A stretch of DNA of 64,000 bases from Hyalangium minutum (GTDB taxonomy: Bacteria > Myxococcota > Myxococcia > Myxococcales > Myxococcaceae): contig NZ_JMCB01000002.1 of NCBI RefSeq assembly GCF_000737315.1, positions 248,001 through 312,000 of the forward strand, written 5' to 3'. This document shows, piece after piece, positions 1 through 5,220 of this stretch. The first letter of the stretch is position 1. Every line of letters begins with the position of its first letter. The notes beneath the pieces are model-generated. The model had not been told where the DNA came from. It ran no database searches and was given only the letters and a program-made list of their open reading frames with translations. The position numbers were made by a program, and so were the translations under genes.

Positions 1-1109
1 GCTGGCGCGAGGCAGGAGGCCACTCCCCAACTCATGGAAAAGACGCCCTGGTAGCTGCCGCGCAGCTGAGGCGAGGCGAGATCCGCCACCACCGAGGAGG
101 AGACGGTCGCGCCGAGGATCTCCCCCACCGTCCACACGGCCACGGCGAGCATGGCCAGCGGAACGGTGGCGGACAGCGCGTGCAGCCCGAAGCCCAGCCC
201 GGTGAACACCGCACCCGCCGCGAGCACGGAGGAGCGGCGCCACCGGGTGACGAGGCGCGCCATAATGGGCTGCAGCAGGACGATCAGCACCCCGTTGACG
301 GCCATGATCGTCCCGTACTCCGTCGTCCGCAGTCCGCGGGCGATCAGGTCCAAGGCGAGCGCCGTGTGGCCCTGGAAGAAGATCAGCGCCACCATGAAGT
401 TGGGCACCCAGAAGGCCAGGAAGGTCTTGTCCTTGAAGGGGACGGCCGAAGGCAGCAGCGAGCGCGAGGGGGTGAACTGGGGACTGGTCTCCGGGACCTT
501 GAACCAGACGACGCAGCCGTAGATGAAGGTGGTGAGCGCATCCCCCACGAAGAGCAGCAGGAAGCCGCCCTGGGCCACGAAGCCTCCTAGCGGCAGGGCG
601 ATGGCGAAGCCCACGTTCACCACCCAGTACAGCAGGCCATAGGCGCGAACCCGATCATTGGGGGCCACCACGTCCGCGACGGCTGCGGATACAGCGGGCC
701 GGTAGAGATCTCCCAGGAGTCCGGCGGTGAAGGCGGCGATGCGCAGCCACAGGAGCTGCTCGGAGAAGCCCAGGAAGAGCATTCCTCCCGAGGCCAGCCA
801 GAGCCCCAGCACCAGCGCGATGCGGCGCCCGAACCGGTCCGCGAGCATCCCGCCCACCAAGGAGGACAGCATCGAGCCCGCGCCGAACAGCGCCACGACA
901 AAGCCAGCCCGCTCCTCCGTGAGGCCCCGCTCGCGCGTCAGGTAGATCGCCAGAAAGGGCACGACGAAGCCGCCCAGCCGGTTCACCAGGGTGCCCACCC
1001 ACAAGACCCAATAGGTGGAGGGCAACCCGCCGACGGTGACACGCAGCTGCTCCACGAGCTTGTGGCGGAGCGTCACGGTGGAAGGGGAGGACATGCTGGC
1101 GCGCAGCAT
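1..1109 (-). CDS. MFS transporter (C-terminus runs off the window edge)
   Basis: Frame not listed in the ORF track; read by hand: M(LRASM)SSPSTVTLRHKL...YWVLWVGTLVNRLGGFVVPFLAIYL...GGMLADRFGRR (MFS motif A), with many TM helices. Alternative start at 1094. Confidence 0.9.
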   Translation of the reverse strand, partial: MLRASMSSPSTVTLRHKLVEQLRVTVGGLPSTYWVLWVGTLVNRLGGFVVPFLAIYLTRERGLTEERAGFVVALFGAGSMLSSLVGGMLADRFGRRIALVLGLWLASGGMLFLGFSEQLLWLRIAAFTAGLLGDLYRPAVSAAVADVVAPNDRVRAYGLLYWVVNVGFAIALPLGGFVAQGGFLLLFVGDALTTFIYGCVVWFKVPETSPQFTPSRSLLPSAVPFKDKTFLAFWVPNFMVALIFFQGHTALALDLIARGLRTTEYGTIMAVNGVLIVLLQPIMARLVTRWRRSSVLAAGAVFTGLGFGLHALSATVPLAMLAVAVWTVGEILGATVSSSVVADLASPQLRGSYQGVFSMSWGVASCLAP

Positions 1110-1213: not shown

Positions 1214-1810
1214 TCAGCCTTTCACCACGGGCAGGGCCGCGAGCGCGGCGGGGCGCTTCTCCGGAGCGCACATGTTGTTGTCAGCCGGGCGCTTGCCGAA
1301 GAAGAGCTGGTTGCCCTCCACCCTCACGAGGTCGTGGTCCGTGCCGCACGCGGACGTGGGCTGGAAGAACAGGCAGCCCGTGGCTGTCGTCCGCTGCTCC
1401 TCGCCCACCTTCCACGTGCCCGTGCCGCACTTCGCGTTCTGGAACGCGTCCGCCAGCGGCTGCATGTGCGGCGTCATGTAGAGCTCTCCGAAGCCGAAGT
1501 TGCCCTCGGTGGCCCCCGGTACCGCCGCCGAGTCCTTCACCAGCGTGTACGGCCCCTGGACGCGCGCGGTGAACAGCTTCGCCTGGCACTGTGCGTCCCC
1601 GAACGCCTCCAGCCGCAGCGCCCAGGTGTTCTCCGTCAGCGTGAAGTGGCGCTGGATGTAGTTGTTGTTCCCAGCGGGTTCGCACGTGGGGCTGTCCCAG
1701 GCGCCAGCCAGTTCCTGCGGCGTCACCGCTGTCTTGGGCCCCTGCGGGGTGGTGGCGCAGGCGGCGGACAGCGCGGCGAGGGCAGCGAGGAGGCGGAGCG
1801 AGGTCTTCAT
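1214..1810 (-). CDS. Lipoprotein with APCDD1-like domain
   Basis: Signal peptide and lipobox (LSAAC), AAGGAAG RBS. Motifs WDSPTCE, RHFTL..NTW, D.QC...LF, GATE..F, CG.GTWKVG, LFFGKRP.D, PEKRP match the APCDD1 repeat as I recall it. Confidence 0.75.
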   Translation of the reverse strand: MKTSLRLLAALAALSAACATTPQGPKTAVTPQELAGAWDSPTCEPAGNNNYIQRHFTLTENTWALRLEAFGDAQCQAKLFTARVQGPYTLVKDSAAVPGATEGNFGFGELYMTPHMQPLADAFQNAKCGTGTWKVGEEQRTTATGCLFFQPTSACGTDHDLVRVEGNQLFFGKRPADNNMCAPEKRPAALAALPVVKG

Positions 1811-1932
1811 GGTGTGCTTCCTTTCACGGTGAATCGGGCGCGGCGTGCGTCCCGAACGCTCCAAGAAATGCCTCAGCCTTCGCCCTGCGGAAACGCTGGA
1901 GTTCGCCGGATACCCCTGCGAATCTGCAGGCC

Positions 1933-2907
1933 ATGCCGCATTGGGATGACCTTCGCTACTTCCTGGCCATCGCCCGGGAGGGTTCACTCGCCTCGGCGGG
2001 ACGGGCGCTCCGGGTGGATGCCACCACCGTAGGACGGAGGCTCAGCGTGCTCGAGGAGGGGCTGGGGGCGCGGCTCTTCGACCGGATGCCCGCGGGCTTC
2101 GTGCTCACGGAGGCCGGGCGCAACATCCGCTCCGCCGTAGAGGAGATGGAGGCCGCCGTGCTCGCCGTGGAGCGCAAGGCCAGTGGGGATGACACCCGCT
2201 TGGAGGGCGTGGTGCGCGTCACCATGACCGAGGCCTTCGCCGTGAGCACGTTGCTGCCCCGCTTCGCCCCTTTTCGCGAGCGCCACCCTGGCATCGAGGT
2301 GCAGTTCCTCACCGACTACGGCGCCCTGGACCTCGTCCGGCGCGAGGCGGACATCGCCGTGCGCCTCACCCGTCCCAAGGAAGACACACTGGTGGCTCGC
2401 AAGGTGGGGGAGATCGCCATCGCCCCCTATGCCGCCGAGCGCTACCTGACTCGCAAGGGGCAGCCAGATCCAGCGTCCGGCTTCGCCGGGCACGAGGTCA
2501 TCGGCTACGCGGATGCGGCCTCGAAGTGGCCCGAGGCGCGGTGGGTGGGGGAGGTGGGGGCCTCGGCTCGGGTGGCGGTGCGCTGCAACTCGCTGCTGTC
2601 GGTGGTGGCGGCTGCCGCGGCGGGTGTGGGGATTGGGCTGATGCCGTGTTTCATGGGCGACAGGGATCCGGAGCTGCGCCGGCTGATGCCCCCCGTTTCT
2701 TCCCTGCGGCGCGATATCTGGCTGGTGGTTCACCGCGACTTGCAGCACAACGCGCGTGTGCGTGCCGTGCTTCACTTCCTTGACGAGCTCATCCAGCGTG
2801 AGCGCCCGCTCATCGCGGGAGAGGGGCTTGTCTCGCCCACGTCCGAGCCCGTGGCGCCCTCCCGGCCCCCTGCGGTGGCACGCAAGCCGAGGGCTCGCTC
2901 CGTATGA
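1933..2907 (+). CDS. LysR-family transcriptional regulator
   Basis: N-terminal WDDLRYFLAIAREGSLASAGRAL..DATTVGRRL HTH, followed by a substrate-binding domain (..READIAVR.., AAAAGVGIGLMP). Confidence 0.95.
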   Translation: MPHWDDLRYFLAIAREGSLASAGRALRVDATTVGRRLSVLEEGLGARLFDRMPAGFVLTEAGRNIRSAVEEMEAAVLAVERKASGDDTRLEGVVRVTMTEAFAVSTLLPRFAPFRERHPGIEVQFLTDYGALDLVRREADIAVRLTRPKEDTLVARKVGEIAIAPYAAERYLTRKGQPDPASGFAGHEVIGYADAASKWPEARWVGEVGASARVAVRCNSLLSVVAAAAAGVGIGLMPCFMGDRDPELRRLMPPVSSLRRDIWLVVHRDLQHNARVRAVLHFLDELIQRERPLIAGEGLVSPTSEPVAPSRPPAVARKPRARSV

Positions 2908-3809
2908 TGGCGGTCATCAGCTTGCTGGGCGTGTGCCTGGTGCTCGGAGTGCTCGCGCGTCGCACAGACCGTTTTCCACCGCAGACGGTCCCGGTGCTCA
3001 ACTCGTTCATCATCGCGGTCGCCTTGCCTGCGCTCGTACTGCGCGTGGTGCACAAGTTGGAGTTCCATGCCGCCCTGCTGGCGGCCGCCGCTTCGCCGTG
3101 GGTCGTCTTCGTGGTGGCGGTCGCGCTGTTCCGCGGCGTGGGGGCTCGTGTGGGGCTGAAGCGGGAGTCCATCGCCGCGCTCGTGCTTACGGGGGGCCTG
3201 AGCAACACCGCCTTCGTGGGCTTGCCCATGGCCGAGGCGCTGCTGGGACGCGAGGGGCTCGCGGTGGCGGTGGTGGTGGATCAGCTCGGGACCTTCCTCG
3301 TGCTGGCCACGCTCGCGACGCTCTTCGCCGCGCGGGCCTCCGCGGGAGAGGGCGAGGCCCTTCGCCCCGCCGCGCTCATGCGCAAGGTGGTGACGTTCCC
3401 ACCGTTCATCGCGCTCGTCCTGGCGTTGGTGCTGCGGCCGCTGCACTTCCCGGAGTGGGTGGACACGGTGCTGGAGCGGCTGGGGTCGACGCTCACGCCG
3501 CTCGCGCTCTTCTCCGTGGGGTTTCAGCTCCAGCTCCGAGGCTTGAGGGCCAGGGCCGGTGGGTTGGCCCTGGGATTGGTCTTCAAGCTGGTGCTGGCGC
3601 CGGCGCTGGTGGTGCTCGCGCTATGGGCCCTGCCGGTGGAGCCCATCGTCCGCAAGGCCACCCTCATGCAGAACGCCATGGCCCCCATGGTCAGCGGTGC
3701 CATCCTGGCCTCCGAGCACAAGCTGGATCCAGAACTCGCCGCGCTCATGGTGGGCTTCGGCATCCCCCTGAGCTTCCTCACCGTGCTGATATGGATGCAG
3801 TGGGTGTGA
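2904..3809 (+). CDS. AEC (auxin efflux carrier) family transporter
   Basis: About 10 TM helices, SNTAFVGLP and AMAPMVSG motifs. ATGA overlap with the LysR stop. Confidence 0.9.
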   Translation: MMAVISLLGVCLVLGVLARRTDRFPPQTVPVLNSFIIAVALPALVLRVVHKLEFHAALLAAAASPWVVFVVAVALFRGVGARVGLKRESIAALVLTGGLSNTAFVGLPMAEALLGREGLAVAVVVDQLGTFLVLATLATLFAARASAGEGEALRPAALMRKVVTFPPFIALVLALVLRPLHFPEWVDTVLERLGSTLTPLALFSVGFQLQLRGLRARAGGLALGLVFKLVLAPALVVLALWALPVEPIVRKATLMQNAMAPMVSGAILASEHKLDPELAALMVGFGIPLSFLTVLIWMQWV

Positions 3810-3858
3810 GGACGCGCAATTCGGAAGTCCTATATTGAAAGTGGGGTCTCCCTTGAGA

Positions 3859-4680
3859 GTGAGCGCCTATTGCCTGTGTGGGCTCTTGGCGGTGGCGTGC
3901 GCCGCGCCGAGCTCGGGGACGGCCTTCCGTGAGCCCACGGACTGTGTGCTCGATGCGCAGCCGGAGGTCATCCCGGTTCCCGAGCCCATCGAAGGTGAGC
4001 TCAACGAGGCGTTCGACTTCCCCGATTCGCCCGGGTGGTGGGCTCCCGCGCCCATAGACCCCGAGCGTGAGCAGTACCGCGCGGCGCTGGTGTCCCGATT
4101 GGGCGGTGGGCAGGGTCTCCAGCCCCGGGCCCTCATGGAACGGCAGCGTGCCGTCCACGTGACGCTCCCAGGCGACCGCGCCCGCGAGGCCGAGAACATC
4201 GACGCTATCCTTCAAGGCAGGGCCGGCACTCTGGGCACGGCCTCCTGTCTGGAGTGGCGTCTCTTCCAGCGTCAGGCGCACCGCTTCCCCATGATCGAGC
4301 GTCCCACGGAGTTCGGTGCCTACGTCCTGCGCGGCCACGGGCGCATTCGCGTCTATCTCTCGGGCGCCGATCGCGTCGGCGGGAAGCTGCGCCATGAAGT
4401 GCGAGACCAGGTCGTCGCCGATGTGGCTCAGGGATTCGCGCCCGTGGCCCACCTCCACAACCACCCGTTCATGTTCGACCGCAAGCCGGGAGACCGGACC
4501 TGGGCCACCGAGGACACCCTCCAGGACATCGCCGGAGCGCTCTCTCCCAGCCTCACCGATGTGCAGGCCTATCGCGGGATGCGCGAGCACTTCGGACTGC
4601 AGGGCGCCTGGGTCACCAACGGGCTCGACACCTCGCGCTTCTCCGCCGCGGACTTCGATCGGCTCTCCGCGTGGCCATGA
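3859..4680 (+). CDS. Putative lipoprotein with JAB/MPN-like HNHP...PSxxD motif
   Basis: GTG start, LLAVAC lipobox; EFGAYV ... AHLHNHP ... SPSLTD. Confidence 0.6.
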   Translation: MSAYCLCGLLAVACAAPSSGTAFREPTDCVLDAQPEVIPVPEPIEGELNEAFDFPDSPGWWAPAPIDPEREQYRAALVSRLGGGQGLQPRALMERQRAVHVTLPGDRAREAENIDAILQGRAGTLGTASCLEWRLFQRQAHRFPMIERPTEFGAYVLRGHGRIRVYLSGADRVGGKLRHEVRDQVVADVAQGFAPVAHLHNHPFMFDRKPGDRTWATEDTLQDIAGALSPSLTDVQAYRGMREHFGLQGAWVTNGLDTSRFSAADFDRLSAWP

Positions 4681-4698: not shown

Positions 4699-5220
4699 TC
4701 ACGCCAGCTTGCGCGTGAGCTCCACGAACACCGTCTCCCTCGCACCTCGGAGCCTCGGCGGGAAGCGCTTGTCCTCACGGTAGCCCTGGCGCTCCCAGAA
4801 GCGTCGCCCGCCCTCGTTCTGCTCCGCGCAGGCCAGCCGCATCCGCCACGCCCCCTGCGAACGCGCCCAGTCCTCCGCCGCTCGCAGCACGCGCTCGCCC
4901 AGCCCCTTTCCGCGCACGCCCGGCTCGAAGAGCAACAGCCCCAGGTACCACTCGCCCGGCTCTCGGAAGTCCCGCAGCAGATCCAACGCGCCCACCAGCC
5001 TCGGGCGAGGCGTGAAGAGGCCGAAGAAGAACTTGTCCGCGAGCAACTTGCCCGGCGGTAGCTCCTTCAGTTGGTGGCTGGCTTCATCCGGACCGGCTGG
5101 CTGGCCTTCAATGAGCACGTGGTAGTCCGCGCACGCGTCGCACAGCGCCTGGAGGGCCGCCGCGTCCTTCTCATCGAGCCGGCGCACTGTCAGGCCGGTA
5201 TCCGCGGGGATTTGCAGCAC
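4699..5220 (-). CDS. GNAT family N-acetyltransferase
   Basis: LLLFEPGVRGKGLG (motif A) and N..GRRFWERQGY (motif B). Confidence 0.9.
   Translation of the reverse strand: MLQIPADTGLTVRRLDEKDAAALQALCDACADYHVLIEGQPAGPDEASHQLKELPPGKLLADKFFFGLFTPRPRLVGALDLLRDFREPGEWYLGLLLFEPGVRGKGLGERVLRAAEDWARSQGAWRMRLACAEQNEGGRRFWERQGYREDKRFPPRLRGARETVFVELTRKLA

Follow-up and report, generated by a model that had tools for sequence, protein, structure and literature searches.

A gene near one end of a 64,000-nt stretch of the Hyalangium minutum genome (contig NZ_JMCB01000002.1, positions 248,001 to 312,000; hereafter the window) encodes a 198-aa, single-domain lipoprotein that is a genuine relative of the animal Wnt inhibitor APCDD1 and is closest to the domain of that protein named ABD2. 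Bacterial homology to APCDD1 is itself already recorded in Pfam and UniProt: Pfam family PF14921 (APCDDC) has been precomputed on bacterial proteins, and the orthologue in Hyalangium rubrum bears the UniRef name 'APCDD1 domain-containing protein'. Bacterial proteins of ~205 aa were also mentioned by Vonica et al. in a preprint (bioRxiv 10.1101/843714), and the paper describing the APCDD1 structure does not discuss bacterial relatives (PMC10193966). What appears to be unreported is the size of the bacterial family, its linkage to regulators in three phyla, the co-variation of its cysteines, and a bacterial protein with the full architecture of the animal one.

Homology of the lipoprotein to animal APCDD1

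The likeness to APCDD1 had been proposed in a first-pass annotation, made from the DNA letters, on the basis of nine ordered motifs. All nine were present in the predicted order (WDSPTCE, RHFTLTENTW, DAQCQAKLF, GPY, VPGATEGNF, TP, CGTGTWKVG, LFFGKRPAD, and PEKR), and a phmmer alignment paired each with a counterpart in mouse APCDD1 ABD2, again in the same order (WVSQRCE, RHFIFHDNNNTW, DPVCKHPTF, GRY, VMGGTEFVF, TP, CGAEGSWQVG, LFNGQRPSD, and PEKR). The annotation had named an HMMER comparison with the APCDD1 Pfam family as one check of the idea, and PF14921 was recovered with 46.4 bits (E 4.1e-12) against a gathering score of 27. This hidden Markov model (HMM) match spans residues 27-126 only, the N-terminal half of the domain; the remainder falls within the direct alignment of residues 32-194 to ABD2 residues 266-439. 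When phmmer was run against all PDB sequences, APCDD1 alone was significant (8e0r_A, E 9.5e-18), with 50 bits for ABD2 over query residues 32-194 as compared with 15.8 bits for the first half of ABD1. A profile of 46 bacterial homologues, searched against the same database, gave an E value of 5.8e-33, with 80.4 bits for ABD2 and 34.9 bits for ABD1. The lipoprotein is 28-31% identical to ABD2 over ~165 residues and 24% identical to ABD1.

Structure prediction, the other check that had been suggested, led to the same protein. The AlphaFold2 model, built on the 46-homologue alignment, had a pLDDT of 91.5 (at least 95 from residue 31 on) and a pTM of 0.82, and its pattern of strands (residues 36-114), helix (117-125), and further strands (157-172) fits the ABD fold. 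In a Foldseek search of the PDB the top eight matches were APCDD1 chains, and these were the only significant ones (E 6.5e-12 to 7.8e-11; query-normalised TM-score 0.70-0.74; probability 1.00; 28-29% identity). The non-significant tail of the list consisted of ligand-binding barrels, among them VtrC with bile salts, ToxS, nitrophorins, C8-gamma with laurate, and FABPs, which echoes the resemblance to lipocalins and P2 noted in the APCDD1 structure paper (PMC10193966). The Pfam, phmmer, profile, and Foldseek searches thus all returned APCDD1, and nothing else at a significant level; in none of them did the APCDD1 match fail to appear. The protein is a single domain and, by the bit scores above, is most like ABD2, which has the lipid pocket. 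A second copy was sought in the window and not found.

Mouse and human ABD2 (8E0P, 8E0R, 8E0W) share the fold of the model: two curved antiparallel sheets that form a barrel, with a helix-loop element. To this likeness can be added the nine motifs, four cysteines aligned with the two intradomain disulfides of ABD2, and an extracytoplasmic, membrane-tethered location. The architecture of APCDD1 proper is not shared, however. APCDD1 has two tandem ABDs linked by an interdomain disulfide, then a C-terminal transmembrane helix and a short cytoplasmic tail, whereas the lipoprotein is a single 198-aa domain, has neither the interdomain disulfide nor the interface, and carries a predicted N-terminal lipid anchor in place of a C-terminal helix. 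It also differs from ABD2 itself in a predicted extra disulfide (C155-C181) and in shorter loop regions. Among bacterial proteins the comparison is much closer: the 'APCDD1 domain-containing proteins', such as that of H. rubrum (P0005, 81% identical), and the ~205-aa proteins mentioned by Vonica et al. are orthologues or paralogues that agree with it in length, lipobox, cysteines, and flanking genes, with no difference of any weight.

The reading frame is of the kind expected of a coding sequence, with a third-position GC content of 0.85 in a window of 69% GC, and a sequence resembling a ribosome-binding site (AAGGAAG, plus-strand positions 1817-1823) lies 6 nt 5' of the ATG. A longer open reading frame (ORF) with a GTG start, extending to 1987, has no support: it would overrun the neighbouring gene, and all homologues begin at the methionine of MKTS or MNAT. 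The N-terminus, MKTSLRLLAALAALSAAC, is a signal peptide that ends in a lipobox; the n-region, h-region, and lipobox expected of a substrate of Lgt and LspA are all found in MKTSLRLLAALAALSAA-C18, and lipidation is predicted. In this respect the first-pass annotation, which had called a 198-aa lipoprotein here, was borne out. The lipobox cysteine C18 is kept in at least 90% of the 46 aligned sequences, and a lipobox was present in at least 126 of the 209 family members inspected, with a plain signal peptide in most of the others. The predicted mature N-terminus is C-A-T-T-P-Q-G. In Myxococcus xanthus a lysine at +2 directs lipoproteins to the inner membrane and an alanine at +7 to the matrix (PMC3222651). 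Alanine at +2 and glycine at +7 match neither signal, which makes anchoring in the outer membrane the default expectation.

Besides C18, the protein has six cysteines (Table 1). C43, C75, C128, and C146 have aligned counterparts among the cysteines of ABD2, and C155 and C181 are additional to these. Among 203 aligned family domains, all six were retained in 155, C43 and C75 were lost together in 22, and C155 and C181 were lost together in 14. These joint losses pair C43 with C75 and C155 with C181, leaving C128 and C146 as the third pair by elimination, so that the alignment supports three disulfides (43-75, 128-146, and 155-181). With three disulfides and a signal peptide, the protein would be extracytoplasmic. 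ABD2 has two intradomain disulfides and ABD1 has three (PMC10193966). Other near-invariant positions are W38, S40, R54, W63, D72, G86, Y88, F105, T113, D160, G172, R174, R186, and P187, many of them common to the animal domains.

Breadth of the bacterial family and origin of the domain

Searched against 1.84 billion representative proteins, a profile of the family recovered 2,287 clusters (50% identity) at E ≤1e-3, 905 at ≤1e-10, and 246 at ≤1e-30. Most members are ~200 aa in length, and they come from Myxococcota, Bacteroidota, Alphaproteobacteria, and other taxa. Other architectures occur as well. Some proteins carry two domains in tandem (P0061-P0064, P0073, and P0142), one (P0196) is fused to a hydrolase domain of the Cyclase family (PF04199, 133.5 bits), and three (P0101, P0120, and P0198) have an extra N- or C-terminal region that is propeller-like, with sub-threshold Pfam matches only (SSL_N, SBBP, NHL). 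In a further protein (P0075) a weak LysM match is followed by a similar propeller-like region and two APCDDC domains. Such fusions are a hint that the barrel cooperates with enzymes that act on small molecules.

This breadth bears on the origin of APCDD1, which has been described as restricted to Metazoa and possibly a de novo gene, present in ~10 animal phyla and absent from fungi and plants (bioRxiv 10.1101/843714); it is cited in the literature on de novo genes (PMC12605812). A bacterial family of this breadth argues against both descriptions. Since the bacterial family is large and diverse and the animal members are confined to few phyla (bioRxiv 10.1101/843714), a bacterial origin of the domain would be the more economical account, as judged from the distribution of sequences. 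The suggestion in the first-pass annotation that the lipoprotein may reflect the origin of the family or a transfer between kingdoms therefore stood in outline, with a broad bacterial family set against an animal subset, but its clade is not the one closest to animals: the window protein is ~30% identical to ABD2, as compared with ~40% for a rarer bacterial subgroup. With mouse ABD2 as the query, nearly all matches were fragments of vertebrate exons, and little was gained.

One bacterial protein, P0330 (449 aa), has the animal architecture: a signal peptide, two APCDDC domains, a Gly/Ser linker, a C-terminal transmembrane helix, and an RRRV tail. Outside its own cluster it was matched best by APCDD1-like proteins of fish, full-length ones (E 4.5e-45), with 30-34% identity across 81-90% of the length of P0330, and the alignment to one of them is collinear across both domains (blastp E 1e-56). 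The model of P0330, of medium confidence (pLDDT 74) and built on an alignment that consists mostly of animal sequences, superposes on the whole mouse ectodomain over ~400 columns (target-normalised TM-score 0.63-0.65). P0084, the representative of the cluster to which P0330 belongs, lies on a 93.6-kb NCBI contig among genes for PadR, AtuA, PNPOx, and MFS proteins. At its locus (L086:5001-6191; GCA_038322625.1, JBBQGA010000023.1) an in-frame stop near 4962 cuts off the N-terminus; in P0330, which comes from another sample, the N-terminus is intact.

A phylogeny of bacterial and eukaryotic members had also been proposed as a check. Neighbour-joining trees of individual domains did place the animal domains beside P0330 and P0084, but with weak bootstrap values (54% without ABD1 and 33% with it), and the direction of transfer is not proven by them. 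Within each bacterial tandem protein the two domains share 50-61% identity and are closer to each other than to any of the animal domains, from which it follows that the tandem state arose repeatedly and independently. On the same evidence, the notion that the bacterial tandem forms are orthologues of the animal tandem was rejected as unproven.

The opposite course of events, in which the gene is not native to bacteria and was either acquired recently from an animal or assembled from contaminating DNA, would suit the description of APCDD1 as taxon-restricted (bioRxiv 10.1101/843714). Against it stand the GC and codon pattern of the gene, which fits the host genome, its bacterial lipobox and ribosome-binding site, the synteny described below, and the distribution of the family over several bacterial phyla with only ~30% identity to the animal domains. 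Synteny, composition, and breadth together exclude contamination or recent transfer for the window gene, and we attach next to no probability to either.

The locus and its conserved neighbours

The lipoprotein gene is flanked by a divergent gene for a LysR-type regulator, followed by a transporter gene of the AEC family, and on its other side by a gene for an efflux-type transporter of the major facilitator superfamily (MFS) (Table 1). NCBIfam models gave only generic LysR, AEC, and MFS matches for these neighbours, all below cut-off. The 122-bp intergenic region was aligned among 11 myxobacterial loci, and the arms of a dyad, CCTGC-N6-GCAGG, were invariant or nearly so in all 11; an inverted-repeat finder with a seed of 6 had missed these 5-bp arms. 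The second conserved block also begins with CCTGCG. As in head-to-head pairs regulated by LysR proteins, the gap is short and the dyad lies near the start of the regulator gene, from which binding and regulation would be predicted. Judging from the arrangement, this layout is the one expected where a LysR protein is its own repressor and also governs the divergent lipoprotein gene. No terminator-like site was found in a scan of the gap between the lipoprotein and MFS genes, so that co-transcription of the two is possible.

Table 1. Features at the lipoprotein locus of H. minutum, in coordinates of the 64-kb window.
Feature	Position	Strand	Basis and remarks
MFS efflux-type transporter gene	3..1109	-	MFS_1, 142.4 bits; 105 nt 3' of the lipoprotein stop, same strand; runs off the window
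Lipoprotein CDS, APCDD1-domain (PF14921)	1214..1810	-	198 aa plus stop, ATG at 1810; ORF and translation, third-position GC, Pfam, PDB match, AlphaFold2 and Foldseek
Beta-barrel domain (residues 31-198) with C43, C75, C128, C146, C155, C181	1217..1720	-	pLDDT; alignment to ABD2
Signal peptide (residues 1-17) and lipobox C18 (L-S-A-A-C)	1757..1810	-	Sequence; conservation
Divergent intergenic region between lipoprotein and LysR genes, 122 bp	1811..1932		Blocks conserved in 11 myxobacterial loci
Third short conserved block	~1867-1872		Alignment of 11 loci
Second conserved block CCTGCGGAAACGCTGGAG, candidate regulator site or promoter element	1883..1900		Mostly invariant columns; 32 bp from the dyad
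Conserved dyad CCTGCGAATCTGCAGG, candidate LysR site	1915..1930		Comparative alignment; arms CCTGC/GCAGG, 6-nt spacer; abuts the LysR start codon
LysR-type regulator gene, 324 aa	1933..2907	+	Pfam HTH_1, 61.5 bits; LysR_substrate, 122.1 bits
AEC-family (Mem_trans) transporter gene	2904..3809	+	PF03547, 101.9 bits; start overlaps the LysR stop by 4 nt

Conservation of the neighbourhood was assessed in 80 loci from species-representative genomes and in several metagenome loci, in which genes were called and neighbours were clustered, named by Pfam, and counted. The nearest named orthologues are those of Hyalangium (81-87% identity), with flanks syntenic in H. rubrum and H. versicolor, as fits a Hyalangium-like myxobacterium (Archangiaceae), and the LysR/AEC/MFS arrangement is kept in Hyalangium, Pyxidicoccus, Myxococcus, and Vitiosangium. 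Beyond these close relatives the regulator persists: a divergent LysR gene was found within 700 bp upstream in 33 of the 40 Myxococcota and 'delta' metagenome-assembled loci with enough upstream sequence. These regulators belong to two subfamilies and occur in Myxococcaceae, Polyangiaceae, Nannocystis, Kofleriaceae, and Bradymonadia. A core role for the AEC and MFS transporters was considered and dismissed, since both are kept only in close relatives; for the same reason the conserved partner of the family is taken to be a transcription regulator and not an enzyme or transporter.

Regulators of another kind accompany the gene elsewhere. In Bacteroidota an extracytoplasmic-function (ECF) sigma factor gene lay directly downstream on the same strand in 12 of 14 loci, encoding Sigma70_r2 and r4_2 domains and a cysteine-rich C-terminal extension. 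In flavobacteria a Zn-dependent dehydrogenase gene of the quinone-oxidoreductase type lies directly upstream of APCDDC, with gaps of 6-12 nt, in an apparent operon; the full order of dehydrogenase, APCDDC, and ECF sigma factor can be seen at L073:4991-7440 and L079:4987-7428. In half of the alphaproteobacterial loci (6/12) APCDDC was followed by a gene with a YCII domain and then by an ECF sigma factor gene with DUF6596, as at L059:5917-8122 and L070:5992-7991. No anti-sigma factor gene or membrane-spanning partner was conserved in the operons inspected in Bacteroidota and Alphaproteobacteria. The dehydrogenase operons of flavobacteria and the cyclase fusion are a hint, independent of the homology to ABD2, of small-molecule chemistry.

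Several single loci were of interest in their own right. H. versicolor has two tandem APCDDC lipoprotein genes (L005:5363-5956 and L005:6001-6594) where the window has one, and their products are 87% and 61% identical to the window protein. An ORF of the window at 3835-4680 (plus strand, 281 aa) has a lipoprotein-like N-terminus (…GLLAVAC…) and no Pfam or NCBIfam match; a 76%-identical counterpart adjoins the AEC gene in H. versicolor and is missing there in H. rubrum. On a Nannocystis-like metagenome contig (L003:1-2220 and L003:8992-12756) the LysR-APCDDC pair is flanked by genes of isoprenoid or carotenoid type, namely a polyprenyl synthase, several amine-oxidase/phytoene-desaturase-like genes, a methyltransferase, a fatty-acid hydroxylase, and PAP2, and a peptidase M24 gene overlaps the APCDDC stop. 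These neighbours may be a coincidence or may hint at a lipid-like ligand. No tRNA gene was found anywhere in the window (1-64000), and no Rfam family reached its gathering score there.

Proposed function and its alternatives

The protein is an exported one, and we propose that it is lipidated at Cys18 and sorted to the outer membrane, where it would face the periplasm, and that its APCDD1-type barrel would hold a small hydrophobic compound, for instance a fatty-acyl one or something similarly lipid-like. The neighbouring LysR regulator would switch on its expression in response to a small-molecule cue, and in the lineage of the window the AEC and MFS proteins may transport the bound compound, or a related one, across the inner membrane. 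For an outer-membrane-anchored periplasmic barrel of this kind, ligand-holding and LysR-controlled, we see the chances as about even. On its evolutionary side the proposal is that the lipoprotein represents the domain in its ancestral state, as a single unit, before its tandem use in animals. Its role is unrelated to Wnt. The binding of lipidated WNT is biologically implausible in a myxobacterium; a host that has neither a Wnt nor a BMP pathway must offer a different ligand. That the ligand would be a lipid or another hydrophobic compound is suggested by homology to ABD2, which has a hydrophobic pocket of 350 cubic angstroms with density for stearate or palmitoleate, a C16-C18 lipid, in crystal structures (PMC10193966).

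Several points weigh against this proposal. ABD1 has the same fold and a cavity of only 35 cubic angstroms (PMC10193966), so that membership in the fold is by itself no guarantee of a pocket, and the three disulfides inferred for the bacterial protein are as in ABD1, not two as in ABD2. No genes of lipid metabolism were conserved beside the family loci, and the two transporters, as conserved neighbours, are limited to 8 loci (AEC) and 7 relatives (MFS), all of them close. The case for LysR control of the lipoprotein gene consists of the arrangement and the conserved motifs, and a promoter scan matched no sigma-70-type promoter. No NCBIfam family model matched the lipoprotein, and no experimental study of a bacterial member, nor any paper devoted to one, to its regulators, or to a bacterial origin, was found in a literature search from which subscription journals were absent.

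The main alternative is a closed barrel, like ABD1, that would act through its surface and bind no small molecule, either as a structural lipoprotein of the envelope or as a protein-binding or inhibitor module, a role known for some small beta-barrel lipoproteins. The small cavity of ABD1, the third disulfide, and the lack of conserved lipid-metabolic neighbours are all as this explanation would have them, and among the most conserved features are a surface-type C-terminal motif, G-x-R-P-x-D-x-x-M-C-x-P-x-K-R-P, and the charged residues D72, D160, R174, and R186. However, the sequence is clearly nearer to ABD2 than to ABD1, the other folds in the Foldseek list are ligand-binding barrels only, and the fusions in the family are to enzyme-like domains; we consider a closed barrel unlikely. 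The repeated association with regulators in three phyla, for its part, could mean that the lipoprotein is an extracytoplasmic sensing partner, which captures a hydrophobic cue in the periplasm and informs the adjacent regulator, as VtrC and ToxS do for VtrA and ToxR. VtrC and ToxS (5KEW, 8DML, 8ALO) are ligand-binding barrels encoded beside a regulator, and they were the best structural matches other than APCDD1, headed by VtrC (E 0.018, probability 0.97). The matches are nevertheless weak and non-significant (E 0.018-0.42; TM-score 0.33-0.55; 6-9% identity), and the regulators partnered with VtrC and ToxS are membrane-spanning ToxR-type proteins, which are absent from the lipoprotein locus. 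LysR proteins and ECF sigma factors are cytoplasmic, and the inspected operons conserve nothing that would carry a signal to them across the membrane; that the gene is simply a target of its regulator is the simpler account, and a sensing role seems to us rather improbable.

If the barrel does hold a hydrophobic compound, the nearest functional analogy would be with Blc and other calycin lipid binders of the envelope, since bacterial lipocalins are likewise small beta-barrel lipoproteins of Gram-negative bacteria. The analogy does not extend to the fold. A Pfam scan at E up to 1 returned no lipocalin family, and lipocalin-type barrels were only non-significant matches in Foldseek (nitrophorins at E ≥0.2 and C8-gamma at E 0.8, with TM-scores <0.25). 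The lipocalin barrel differs in shape from the APCDD1 type, as Hsieh et al. also noted (PMC10193966).

A broader reading can be put forward tentatively, as possible and rather doubtful: that the barrel of APCDD1 goes back to an ancient envelope module by which bacteria handle small hydrophobic molecules, wired to LysR regulators in Myxococcota and to ECF sigma factors in Bacteroidota and Alphaproteobacteria, and that animals took the barrel over from bacteria and did not invent it. If so, the window lipoprotein would be a tractable model for the native class of ligand of the domain. This matters because APCDD1 is a clinically relevant inhibitor of Wnt and BMP, individual domains of which could not be expressed alone by the authors of its structure (PMC10193966); the bacterial members are small single domains, stabilised by disulfides, that could be expressed alone to learn what the barrel binds. 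For the biology of bacteria, the family constitutes a widespread and functionally uncharacterised set of envelope lipoproteins, and its close ties to regulators of its own suggest that hydrophobic compounds are met with an inducible response.

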